A DNA stretch of 64,000 nucleotides from sequence record OR532817.1. One strand, given 5' to 3'. Position 1 is the first letter of the stretch. Every line of letters begins with the position of its first letter. The notes below the pieces were generated by a model. It did no database searches and was not told the origin of the DNA. It saw only the letters and a program-made list of their open reading frames with translations. The translations under genes were made by a program, and so were the position numbers. Positions 12,606-19,067 of the stretch are shown here, in pieces.

Positions 12606-13013
12606 GTGATTTCATTGGAAGGTACATTACAATATGATCCACCAAGGACTATTAAAATCAATGAACCTTATTGGTTAGTACTAAACCTACCAGACGAAAT
12701 TATTAAGTACTACCAATGGTTTGTTCGTAAAGAACTATTCATTGATATTAAAGATCCTCCACACAGTGCTCATGTGAGCATAGTTCGTGGTGAAGTTCCT
12801 CCTAATATTGATATGTGGAAAAAATATGATGGGATGGAATTACATTTCCAATATTATCCATATATTACAATTAAAAAGGATGAGAAAAATCCAGGAAATT
12901 TTTTCTTTATTAACTTTTATTCTGATAAAATAATGAGCATCCGAGACGAACTGGGATTATATTCCAAATATTCCGAGTGGCATTTTACGATTGGTAGAAC
13001 TCACTACGACTAA
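12606..13013 (+). CDS. 2H phosphoesterase-fold protein
   Basis: two Hx(S/T) motifs: AHVSIV and WHFTIG; GAGGA RBS, GTG start. Confidence 0.7.
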   Translation: MISLEGTLQYDPPRTIKINEPYWLVLNLPDEIIKYYQWFVRKELFIDIKDPPHSAHVSIVRGEVPPNIDMWKKYDGMELHFQYYPYITIKKDEKNPGNFFFINFYSDKIMSIRDELGLYSKYSEWHFTIGRTHYD

Positions 13014-13020
13014 ATATAAT

Positions 13021-13054
13021 TTGACATTAAATGAAATCAGTATTAAAATACTGA
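13021..13054 (+). promoter_or_regulatory. sigma70 promoter with operator-like palindrome over -10
   Basis: TTGACA 13021-N17-TAAAAT 13044; TCAGTATT-AA-AATACTGA 13037-13054; TAAATA at 13011. Confidence 0.7.
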
Positions 13055-13069
13055 GATTGTTAAGTCCAT

Positions 13070-13112
13070 AGTGGCTTGATGCGGAAAAGCCACTTTCTGT
13101 ATCAAGCCTTTT
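13070..13112 (+). promoter_or_regulatory. two-state RNA structure in 5' leader
   Basis: AGTGGCTT/AAGCCACT (8 bp) versus GGCTTGATGC/GTATCAAGCC (10 bp) followed by TTTT. Confidence 0.5.
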
Positions 13113-13140
13113 ATTAAACAAAAAAGGAGAAATACAGAAC

Positions 13141-14043
13141 ATGGCGAAACATAACAGAAAAACCATCAAAAAGCTTATTCTTTTAAGTGGTTTAACTGTT
13201 CTTGCTGCCGCTACATTTGAATTTAACGCTTTTTCTAATAACGATCACTTATCATCGCAAAAGGTAAGTATACAGGAACCGCATATTCAGCAAATTCAAA
13301 AGCAAGTACTTAATATTACAGTACTTAACAGCGAGAATGAAAAATACACGGTACAGGCTGGTGATACATATAAAAGTATTTCCGTTAAATATAAGCCAAA
13401 AAACGTGAAACTATCCGAGTATATCACATTAATAAAAAATATTAATTTGAATGCTCCTATTAGAACTTCTCAAGTTATCCTCTTACCTAATAAAGAGGAT
13501 TTGCAGAGCATTATGACTGATGAGGTTATAAAATTCGATTATACAAACCCAAATTTTATTTCTCACTTAAAAGAACAAGAGGGATCAAAAAAATATCAAA
13601 GTACTACTAAACGTAGATTGTTAAATGGTACTTATGGTTATTCTTACAAAAACTCTAAGTTCTATCCATACAGAGATAGCTATGGTAATTACACCATAGG
13701 CTTCGGTCATTATATTTCTCGTAATGAATCAGTTGCAATGAAGTACAAAAATGGCATCAGTACTAAGGAAGCACATGATTTATTACTTGAAGATCTTAAA
13801 GTTACTGATTTACAATTAACCAAATTATTACAAGAAAAGAATGTTAAAAATTTGAGTCCATACCAAGAGAGGGTATTATTTGAAATGACATTTATGTTAG
13901 GTTCAGATAAATTGTCAAAATTCCATACAATGTGGAGTGGTATTAAAACTGGAAATCATAAAAAGGTTAAACAGGCTATTGTCAATTCATTGTGGTATCG
14001 TCAGGTACCAAATCGTGCTGAATTGCTCGTAAACAATCTTTAA
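13141..14043 (+). CDS. LysM-domain T4-lysozyme-like muramidase with N-terminal signal/anchor
   Basis: YTVQAGDT LysM; EG...YRDSYGNYTIGFGH; SLWYRQVPNRA C-terminus; AGGAG RBS. Confidence 0.85.
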   Translation: MAKHNRKTIKKLILLSGLTVLAAATFEFNAFSNNDHLSSQKVSIQEPHIQQIQKQVLNITVLNSENEKYTVQAGDTYKSISVKYKPKNVKLSEYITLIKNINLNAPIRTSQVILLPNKEDLQSIMTDEVIKFDYTNPNFISHLKEQEGSKKYQSTTKRRLLNGTYGYSYKNSKFYPYRDSYGNYTIGFGHYISRNESVAMKYKNGISTKEAHDLLLEDLKVTDLQLTKLLQEKNVKNLSPYQERVLFEMTFMLGSDKLSKFHTMWSGIKTGNHKKVKQAIVNSLWYRQVPNRAELLVNNL

Positions 14044-14060
14044 AACATTTTTTTTTGACA

Positions 14061-14090
14061 TTGACAACATTACAGATTGTGTGTTATAAT
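14061..14090 (+). promoter_or_regulatory. sigma70 early promoter
   Basis: TTGACA-N18-TATAAT with upstream T tract. Confidence 0.75.
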
Positions 14091-14116
14091 AAAGGGACTT
14101 TAAGAGTCCCTTTTTC
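14091..14116 (+). terminator. intrinsic terminator
   Basis: AAAGGGACT/AGTCCCTTT + T tract. Confidence 0.7.
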
Positions 14117-14130
14117 TATTTGGAAAATGT

Positions 14131-14583
14131 ATGCAAGAAACAATCAAATCTATTTCATTAAAAAATGAATTACAATCTGTACTTGATATTAAAGATATTC
14201 ATTACTATAGAAAAAGAGATAAAAATAATAAATTTAGTGCAGGATGGTTTAAAATAACAAAAAATACAAGTATTTGTCAGGCACGTTGTGGTGTGAATTA
14301 TGCTTCGTATCTTTGTATTGAAGTACGTTATCCAAACAGAGATGAATTAAAATTTAAGTTATACAATGATGCAATTGTATTGGAAGTGAGAAACGGGTTT
14401 ATTAATATTTTTACGTTTAAACATGTACAACATTGTAGATTTACACCTGATTTATCTTATGATATGTACCATCAATATATGTTCATTGAAGACCATTGGA
14501 ATTTATCATACGATGAGTATTCAGTACTGAACAAGATTTATAATAAATGTAAAGATCATTTATTGAAAGAAGAAAAAAGATGA
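14131..14583 (+). CDS. hypothetical protein
   Basis: 150-aa ORF. Confidence 0.7.
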   Translation: MQETIKSISLKNELQSVLDIKDIHYYRKRDKNNKFSAGWFKITKNTSICQARCGVNYASYLCIEVRYPNRDELKFKLYNDAIVLEVRNGFINIFTFKHVQHCRFTPDLSYDMYHQYMFIEDHWNLSYDEYSVLNKIYNKCKDHLLKEEKR

Positions 14584-18278: not shown

Positions 18279-19067
18279 ATGTACGATTATATGGCTGGCA
18301 ATCCAGATGCTCCAAATTTTGATCACAGAGAGAAAATTAAAGATACTATTACACAAATGCTTGGTGCAGGTGCTGTAAATGTAGAACTCACTGATGGTCA
18401 ACTTGAAATTGCAATAGATAATGCAGTGAGTAATTACAGAGCATGGAGTTCTGCATCAAAAGAAGAAGCATTTTTACATTTAAAAATGTTCGATTCACAG
18501 AGTGTTTATGTACTTCCTACTGAAGTTGAAATAGTACATAAAATTTATCGCTACGGAAATGGATATTTAAGTTCTGGACAAGGTTCAGCAACTGACCCTT
18601 TTAGTTTAGCATTCACCAATAGTTATGTCCTCCAATCTGCACGAAATGCAGGTGGTTATGATTTAGCTACTTATGATTTTTCATTCCAATATCAAGAACT
18701 TGTCGCCAGAATGTTTGGAAGAGATATTATTTTTCAATTCAATCCAGTAACAAAGAAATTAGTACTTGATCGTGATATTCGAGGAAATGAAGAAGTATTA
18801 ATTCATGTTTTTCAAAACTTACCAGAACCGATGTTATTCCAGAAACAACAATCGTATCCATGGTTGCGTGATTGGGCTTTATCAGAAGCCATGATCATGT
18901 TAGGTAGAAACCGTAATAAATTTGCCACTCTACCCGGTCCACAAGGTACATTTTCAATGGATGGACAACAGATGCTCGCAGATGGTCAACAATTGCAACA
19001 AGAATTAAAAGAACGATTAAGAAAATACGAAGATGGTTCTCAACCACTTGGTATGATTATTGGATAA
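18279..19067 (+). CDS. neck protein (T4 gp13-like)
   Basis: KIKDTITQMLGA..VNVELTDGQL..AIDNA; WLRDWALSEAM..LG; GAGGTG RBS; TAAATA 18244. Confidence 0.85.
   Translation: MYDYMAGNPDAPNFDHREKIKDTITQMLGAGAVNVELTDGQLEIAIDNAVSNYRAWSSASKEEAFLHLKMFDSQSVYVLPTEVEIVHKIYRYGNGYLSSGQGSATDPFSLAFTNSYVLQSARNAGGYDLATYDFSFQYQELVARMFGRDIIFQFNPVTKKLVLDRDIRGNEEVLIHVFQNLPEPMLFQKQQSYPWLRDWALSEAMIMLGRNRNKFATLPGPQGTFSMDGQQMLADGQQLQQELKERLRKYEDGSQPLGMIIG

Follow-up and report, generated by a model that had tools for sequence, protein, structure and literature searches.

A conserved RNA leader predicted to close the endolysin gene's ribosome-binding site in RaK2-like jumbo phages, with a terminator-like form in the Klebsiella lineage

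The 127-bp spacer preceding a lysozyme gene in a 64,000-nucleotide stretch of phage DNA (sequence record OR532817.1, hereafter called the window; all features given below lie on the + strand) is judged, from comparison with related phages, to encode a real cis-regulatory leader for the endolysin mRNA. This leader's principal conserved role is the sequestration of the ribosome-binding site, a role overlooked in an earlier, sequence-only reading of the same DNA, which had proposed an operator-covered promoter and an attenuator or riboswitch-like element. The more general part of that proposal, a regulatory RNA leader with mutually exclusive pairings ahead of a cell-wall hydrolase, is supported by the alternative folds and by the covarying helix A described below. 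The leader most likely holds back a dangerous lysis enzyme until a late stage of infection, and the overall model, held with moderate confidence, is that of an ancestral cis-acting RNA lock on the endolysin, to which the Klebsiella lineage adds a terminator, giving a double lock.

The 1.5 kb around the spacer was found to be 100% identical to Klebsiella phage RCIP0023 and to share 98-99.5% identity with phages K64-1, RaK2, Muenster and KP13-7 (genus Alcyoneusvirus, 346-358 kb); by this identity the window phage is a RaK2-like Klebsiella jumbo phage. The 127-bp spacer is preceded by thymidine kinase, a number of small ORFs and a 135-aa ORF that ends at 13013; after it come the gene for a 300-aa protein (13141-14043) and then tRNA nucleotidyltransferase, NUDIX and glutaredoxin genes. 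The 300-aa protein starts with a basic stretch, continues with a weakly hydrophobic Gly/Ala/Ser/Thr-rich segment that may act as an anchor, and contains a LysM-like region (weak match) and a T4-type lysozyme domain (Phage_lysozyme match, E 3e-8). It is predicted to be the signal-anchored, SAR-type endolysin (transmembrane segment, LysM and T4-type lysozyme) of RaK2-like phages. Its homologue CBB_187 has been described as the enzyme predicted to serve RaK2-like phages as endolysin, and as carrying at its N-terminus a transmembrane domain of the signal-arrest-release type; induction of CBB_187 inhibited growth of E. coli, and its toxicity defeated attempts at cloning and expression (PMC5259590). 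Full-length homologues of the lysozyme were found in 71 phage records, every one of them a RaK2-like jumbo phage. As a side observation, the next gene after the endolysin in most relatives (121Q and BF among the loci) encodes an HPF/RaiA-type ribosome-associated protein, and in the window the slot after the endolysin is taken by an unrelated 150-aa ORF (14131-14583) having no Pfam match.

Homologous versions of the leader were found in at least seven RaK2-like phage lineages. Every lineage examined contains a box of the form TGTAGAAAGTCC, short loop, GRCTTTGTGCA, which hardly varies between genera over its 27 nt, in contrast to the drifting remainder of the leader, and which stands 79-96 nt upstream of the start codon in every lineage. 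The box is present in leaders of Asteriusvirus (121Q, UE-S1, A4, Ecwhy_1 and CMSTMSU), Eneladusvirus (BF and Yen9-03) and Mimasvirus (GAP32, CBB, XbC2 and Kaldavass), as well as in those of Munch-like phages, EJP2, Hallingskeid and several metagenomic contigs. The window carries a diverged copy at 13057-13082, which can form a hairpin, H0. The first 11 bases of the box, GTAGAAAGTCC, occur in one exact copy in each of five genomes, and because of this single occurrence per genome a general promoter or repeat motif was ruled out.

A covariance model was built from eight leaders of the BF/GAP32 clade only, with helices A and S (see below) as its structure. It recovered the 121Q, A4, Munch, EJP2, Hallingskeid and metagenomic lineages end to end, and it matched the window at 13048-13147 with 25.7 bits and an E value of 0.0067. 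A wide pattern scan of viral contigs returned 116 stretches, of which 11 were true matches after filtering, the pattern being too loose. Within Alcyoneusvirus, nine leaders are identical except that a 98% strain has a single additional A within the A-run at 13119; because of this identity the terminator hairpin cannot be tested by covariation inside the genus. Among the leaders compared, the terminator form, that is, a long hairpin followed by a U-run, is confined to Alcyoneusvirus, the Klebsiella lineage. As a separate observation, the first 30 nt of the lysozyme ORF differ by a single nucleotide across BF, GAP32, CBB and XbC2, despite an identity of only about 75% between the proteins; these 30 nt can form a hairpin holding the UUG start, and they show complementarity to the box's 3' arm as well. 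The near-identity suggests an RNA-level constraint inside the lysozyme ORF.

In its general form the leader would be read in the order hairpin P0, near-invariant box, helix A with an SD-like decoy in its loop, anti-SD strand, and finally the SD sequence and start codon. In the window, H0 pairs 13059-66 with 13073-80 (-6.4 kcal/mol), and helix A pairs 13070-77 with 13087-94 (8 bp, -11.2 kcal/mol), exactly as in the sequence-only reading; helix A excludes both H0 and the terminator hairpin. The second helix of that reading, B, is likewise present, with its U-run and terminator-like character, and only the length given for it was too short: the full hairpin, B/T, pairs 13073-87 with 13094-108 over 15 bp (-22.8 kcal/mol), with a loop at 13088-93 and a U-run at 13109-15. 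This hairpin with its U-run, UUUUAUU, was the best terminator-like site in a scan of 9-18 kb and is a credible intrinsic terminator on the folding models. The reported duplication of AAGCC was found at 13087-91 and 13104-08. The GATGC/GTATC pairing, which had been taken for an extension of helix A to a pseudoknot, is no more than the interior of helix B; as an H-type knot stacked on helix A it would have a first loop of 0 nt and a loop of 4 nt crossing an 8-bp stem, and is sterically doubtful.

The same nucleotides that make up the 3' arm of B/T and its U-run form the anti-SD strand (13089-13112), which makes up the 5' side of helix S. Its partner on the 3' side is the translation initiation region (TIR, 13122-13145), including the SD AAGGAG at 13124-29 and the ATG at 13141. 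Helix S pairs 13095-102 with 13132-39, 13107-12 with 13122-27 in the SD region, and 13089-92 with 13142-45, the last segment taking in two bases of the start codon. A 12-codon mini-ORF, from AUG 13079 to UAA 13115-17, runs over the terminator loop, 3' arm and U-run and has no good SD. The leader of 121Q likewise has a 12-codon ORF, from the box loop to the anti-SD strand and again lacking a good SD, and no counterpart of the mini-ORF was found in the BF, GAP32 and Munch leaders. A start-stop or leader ORF at the box itself was rejected, since the NUG-UAG of several lineages is part of a stem and is not accompanied by an SD.

Folding of the 90-nt leader gave z = -3.5 against shuffles, and both partners of the shared strand pair beyond shuffles, with z = -4.8 for B and z = -5.6 for S. 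Helix S belongs to the minimum-energy fold of the leader, the combined energies being -23.5 kcal/mol for A + S and -26.4 kcal/mol for H0 + S with outer pairs. When the transcript is grown from 13056, the minimum-energy fold passes from H0 to A, then to T (3' ends 13108-13140), and finally, from 13146, to A or H0 together with S. T is thus the minimum-energy fold exactly when polymerase would occupy the U-run. The overlap is of the antiterminator type, since A and H0 share 13073-80 and 13087 with T; T and S are also mutually exclusive, T freeing the ribosome site and S closing it. In the window T and the closed fold are nearly isoenergetic (-24.1 vs -27.8 kcal/mol), because helix B has been lengthened to 15 bp with a U-run in Alcyoneusvirus. 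With the whole leader present, opening the TIR at equilibrium costs only 4.5 kcal/mol because T competes, against 16.6 kcal/mol once the box region is removed, and therefore the translational lock is expected to be weaker here than in relatives.

Eighteen sequences were aligned to the covariance model. In this alignment 91.6% of the cells of A + S were paired, with double changes in 10 of the 18 pairs (35 cells), counts that are favoured because the alignment had been fitted to the A + S structure. The pairs can also be read directly in the raw leaders; pairing as high was reached in 0 of 500 shuffles, and partners slid by 1-3 columns were only 36-66% paired. At one pair of helix A, for instance, nine leaders have C-G, eight have A-U and the window has U-A. 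On these alignments, helices A and S are supported by covariation across genera. Covariation among homologous leaders was the check recommended in the sequence-only reading, and its outcome was divided: helix A covaries, whereas helix B, formed by the decoy and the anti-SD strand, had 83% of its cells paired and covariation no better than shuffles, with a single compensatory event, in one metagenomic leader. For H0, 98% of the cells were paired and 7 of 10 pairs never vary; because the arms of the box are almost invariant, covariation says little about this hairpin. Helix B and H0 are compatible with the data, and unproven. As for the attenuator that had been proposed, the hairpin with its U-run and the exclusive upstream helix speak for it, while the terminator is not conserved and helix B lacks significant covariation. 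Alignment of the raw leaders by MAFFT followed by RNAalifold gave nothing beyond H0 and a hairpin at the start codon, owing to a wrong alignment of the variable middle; the covariance-model alignment was used instead.

The duplex between anti-SD strand and TIR was stronger than in mononucleotide shuffles in 15 of 16 scored leaders (z -2.6 to -7.4), the scoring pattern having left out EJP2 and Hallingskeid. Opening the TIR costs 6.6-15 kcal/mol in the relatives, to be compared with a median of 4.4 and a 95th percentile of 12.4 kcal/mol over 52 genes of the window, a background based on crude gene starts. Three putative starts in this crude list, at 18279, 21891 and 4465, were far more deeply buried than all the others, with opening costs of 22.0, 18.8 and 14.1 kcal/mol against the same median of 4.4, an observation that concerns other genes. 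The SD-like decoy opposite the anti-SD strand recurs in every lineage, and in most lineages forcing the TIR open makes the anti-SD strand pair with this box-adjacent decoy; the decoy-paired open state lies 4-14 kcal/mol above the closed state. A relay in which removal of the 5' arm of the box opens the TIR was considered and rejected as a general mechanism, as such truncation opens the TIR in some lineages only.

The consensus sigma70 promoter of the sequence-only reading is present at 13021-13049 (TTGACA 13021-26, 17-nt spacer, TAAAAT 13044-49), with 11/12 consensus matches and an A/T-rich upstream stretch at 13010-20. It ranks second among 60 promoter-like sites in 9-18 kb, and its transcription start would lie near 13056. 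A second candidate sigma70 promoter (TTGGTA-18-TATAAT, 12991-13020), recognised by consensus match only (10/12), lies 29 bp upstream of the first within the same spacer. Sigma70-type promoters upstream of the box were also found in 121Q, UES1 and Ecwhy1 (Asteriusvirus), in EJP2 and in Hallingskeid. The motif TAAATA, previously regarded as a late element, is indeed present at 13011-16, and the late-promoter reading of it did not hold: a search for the T4-type late promoter TATAAATA with at most one mismatch, from -120 to +100 of the box, found none in or near 17 leaders. TAAATA followed by four bases and the -35 element is an arrangement common to the window and Asteriusvirus, and the other strong promoters of the window likewise carry A/T-rich upstream stretches; for these two reasons TAAATA was read as an A/T-rich upstream element. 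It also overlaps the perfect TATAAT (13015-20) of the second candidate promoter.

The perfect palindrome over the -10 element was confirmed, with 8-bp arms at 13037-44 and 13047-54 and a 2-nt centre, covering 13044-49. Its interpretation as an operator was not sustained, the site being unique in the genome and the relatives keeping the pairing and not the sequence. Within 3 mismatches it is the single site in the 64-kb window, and within 2 mismatches the single site in the 350-kb genome of RCIP0023. As RNA the same stretch (P0, 13037-13054) forms a hairpin of 7 bp (-6.1 kcal/mol). At the P0 position every lineage has a small hairpin, 5-8 bp long and with its end 2-5 nt upstream of the box, in at least five unrelated sequences, mononucleotide shuffles serving for comparison. 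Because the lineages hold unrelated hairpin sequences at the same position, P0 was read as an RNA hairpin, and the palindrome is more likely a local copy of this small hairpin than a protein operator. P0 sits upstream of the probable start of the 13021 promoter and would therefore be present only in transcripts begun further upstream; the tandem promoters of the spacer would thus yield leaders with and without P0. Moreover, the palindrome is made up of CAGTACTG divided into its halves by TTAAAA. This word, itself a palindrome, occurs at 33 sites in the window (e.g. 953, 12319 and 14522) against 0.55 expected, and 248 times in RCIP0023, 194 in 121Q, 68 in Munch, 72 in BF and 130 in GAP32, with 2-5 occurrences of the reversed control; its sites have no flanking consensus. 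Phage A4 carries an intact CAGTACTG where the window has the palindrome. Because the arms are halves of so highly iterated a word, such palindromes are common here.

In the spacer that follows the endolysin gene, a perfect sigma70 promoter (TTGACA, 18 nt, TATAAT with TG; 14061-14090) was observed immediately before a terminator hairpin (14091-14113), which is included in the Muenster annotation. The promoter's own start, at about 14097, would be within the 5' arm of this hairpin, so that upstream transcripts would stop at 14091-14113 and its own transcripts would not.

Searches for known families gave no match to the leader or to a releasing factor. In Rfam 15 nothing in the window reached the gathering score, the best riboswitch-like match being preQ1-II with 18.5 bits against a threshold of 47, and the loci of four relatives gave no match; the suggestion of a riboswitch-like element thus found no family to support it in the window or in these four loci. 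Antiterminators of the Q family (PF06530, PF03589) were not found in the 350-kb genome, controls being positive, and the Com-like zinc ribbon PF10122 gave no match, but its control genomes were silent too. Within the window, RNA complementary to the box or to the anti-SD strand did not go beyond chance extremes. The sequencing runs in which the sequence was found, from wastewater and from isolates, consist of contigs that probably derive from DNA, and they yielded neither transcript ends nor strand information. A literature search found no transcriptomes of the RaK2-like clade.

The mechanism proposed is as follows. The 127-bp spacer would act as the 5' leader of the endolysin mRNA and as an RNA lock inherited from a common ancestor of the RaK2-like phages. 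In the ground state, A + S, the anti-SD strand would lie on the SD and start region and, because of this pairing, ribosomes could not load, so that the gene would stay closed despite strong early-type sigma70 promoters. In the alternative state the anti-SD strand would pair with the decoy region as helix B, and the ribosome site would be freed. In the Klebsiella lineage helix B, having grown to 15 bp with a U-run, would double as an intrinsic terminator. The order of folding (H0, A, B/T, A or H0 with S) leads to two predicted fates of the transcripts, which would either end near 13112-16 or, where helix A persists, be read through with the ribosome site closed. An open mRNA would come only from a polymerase passing T while B stays formed, which would amount to a double lock. 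We infer where transcription starts, that it does terminate, that the leader is off by default in vivo and that release comes late. Release late in infection would be brought about by a putative factor, most likely a protein or RNA recognising the invariant box, or a termination-resistant late polymerase; recognition by a factor is suggested by the invariance of the box. It is tempting to speculate that the box is the docking site of a putative phage factor, protein or RNA, that flips A + S to the open form, and that it so acts as an RNA 'lysis clock' in all RaK2-like jumbo phages, with the double lock in those of Klebsiella, although we regard this as a tentative possibility. On the same speculative view, the leader of the Klebsiella lineage may in addition give off a terminated leader RNA some 58 nt long.

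Several other explanations were weighed against this RNA lock. The spacer might be ordinary punctuation, in which the terminator of an upstream early operon is combined with an independent restart promoter and the extra pairings are by-products that switch nothing. T does score best among the terminator-like sites, the next spacer too has a promoter and a terminator (14061-14113), B is devoid of covariation and T is lineage-specific, and the equilibrium accessibility of the TIR in the window is average. The promoter, however, lies upstream of the terminator, so that its own transcripts hold the whole hairpin, whereas at 14061 the start falls inside the hairpin; besides, the 3' arm and U-run of the terminator are the anti-SD strand of a helix covarying across genera, and homologous leaders exist in which the terminator is missing, which makes punctuation rather unlikely. 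Only a little less probable is a constant damper, by which A + S would keep endolysin translation low and fixed, nothing would release it, and a holin would set the time of lysis. SAR-type endolysins can build up harmlessly while tethered to the membrane, and the protein has a SAR-like N-terminus; the searches for a trigger (Q-type proteins, complementary RNA in the window, late promoters) were negative, and the closed state is favoured by 4-14 kcal/mol across lineages. Against this, a 27-nt box near-invariant across genera exceeds what a damper needs, and an SD-like decoy faces the anti-SD strand in every lineage.

Control by a dimeric phage or host repressor, which would bind the 18-bp palindrome and time the promoter, would agree with the perfect coverage of the -10 element and with the different palindrome that overlaps the -10 in EJP2 and Hallingskeid. 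It is nevertheless judged very doubtful in view of a site unique in 350 kb, of relatives whose unrelated sequences keep the pairing ability alone, and of arms that are halves of the iterated CAGTACTG. A ligand riboswitch, with the box and helix A as a small-molecule aptamer choosing between A + S and B/T, would account for the mutually exclusive helices, the covarying conserved core and the absence of the leader from Rfam; yet no aptamer family was matched (preQ1-II, 18.5 of 47 bits), the invariant part is one small hairpin, and there is no metabolic logic between a ligand and an endolysin, so that this explanation is unlikely, and more so than the operator. The slightest probability was given to the two roles that might be assigned to the short transcript itself. 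Ribosomes on the mini-ORF (13079-13117), which covers precisely the loop, 3' arm and U-run and has its stop 6 nt upstream of the SD, might block T and S and couple into the endolysin gene, but the ORF has no usable SD and is not kept in BF, GAP32 and Munch. Likewise, a promoter, a 17-nt single strand and a terminator hairpin are the usual layout of a small-RNA gene and might yield a trans-acting RNA of about 58 nt, but the relatives have no terminator and no target complementarity stands out in the window.

The RNA lock, if correct, touches on a subject that is little understood, namely how giant phages with very long cycles silence their endolysin and time lysis. Ahead of the predicted endolysin, about 70 sequenced jumbo phages carry a covariation-supported leader some 130 nt long for which Rfam has no family, and the hosts of the leader-bearing phages comprise Klebsiella, Escherichia, Salmonella, Erwinia, Serratia, Yersinia, Cronobacter, Pectobacterium and Xanthomonas. 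The invariant box offers a testable handle on lysis timing. Since the toxicity of CBB_187 blocked its expression, knowledge of the regulation may also help groups that produce such enzymes.

The arrangement in the window can be compared with that of lambda pR'-tR'/Q, in which a strong sigma70 promoter is also followed by an intrinsic terminator within about 60 nt and then by a lysis gene; with such a layout expression would need a polymerase that ignores the terminator. Unlike lambda, the 350-kb genome gave no detectable Q-family protein and the relatives have no terminator, and in lambda the terminator arm has no RBS-sequestering partner. With attenuators (BglG/SacY RAT, trp, pyrBI) the leader shares the overlap of A or H0 with the 5' arm of T, which results in mutual exclusion, and with the BglG/SacY RAT sites in particular a conserved small hairpin overlapping a terminator. 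It differs from them in that the analysis turned up neither a cognate antiterminator protein nor a conserved leader peptide nor a ligand and, moreover, in that blocking of T by A or H0 here leads to a closed ribosome site and not to expression.

In the com-mom operon of Mu and the maturation gene of MS2, a lock that sequesters the TIR is opened by a factor binding on its 5' side or transiently on the nascent RNA. The likeness to the present leader lies in a toxic or late function placed under a TIR-sequestering structure; in contrast, there is no sequence similarity, and no Com homologue was matched in a search whose control was silent.

The closest parallel is gene e of T4, the TIR of which is held in a hairpin, as are those of soc, 49 and I-TevI; on early T4 transcripts this sequestering structure cuts lysozyme synthesis about 100-fold (PMC3014915). 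In both systems the lysozyme gene is present on early-type transcripts, an upstream strand sequesters the SD and start, and the purpose would be to prevent premature lysis; in the manner of gene e, helix S was found to join the SD and start region to a more upstream part of its own mRNA. The two differ in the way the structure would be bypassed or elaborated: T4 late promoters start inside the 5' strand of the hairpin, whereas no TATAAATA-like site occurs in the 17 leaders studied here, and the present leader is far larger, with P0, the invariant box, helix A, the decoy and helix S, and has a terminator form in one lineage. The leader of the RaK2-like phages thus extends the principle of T4 gene e by means of a different and more elaborate architecture.
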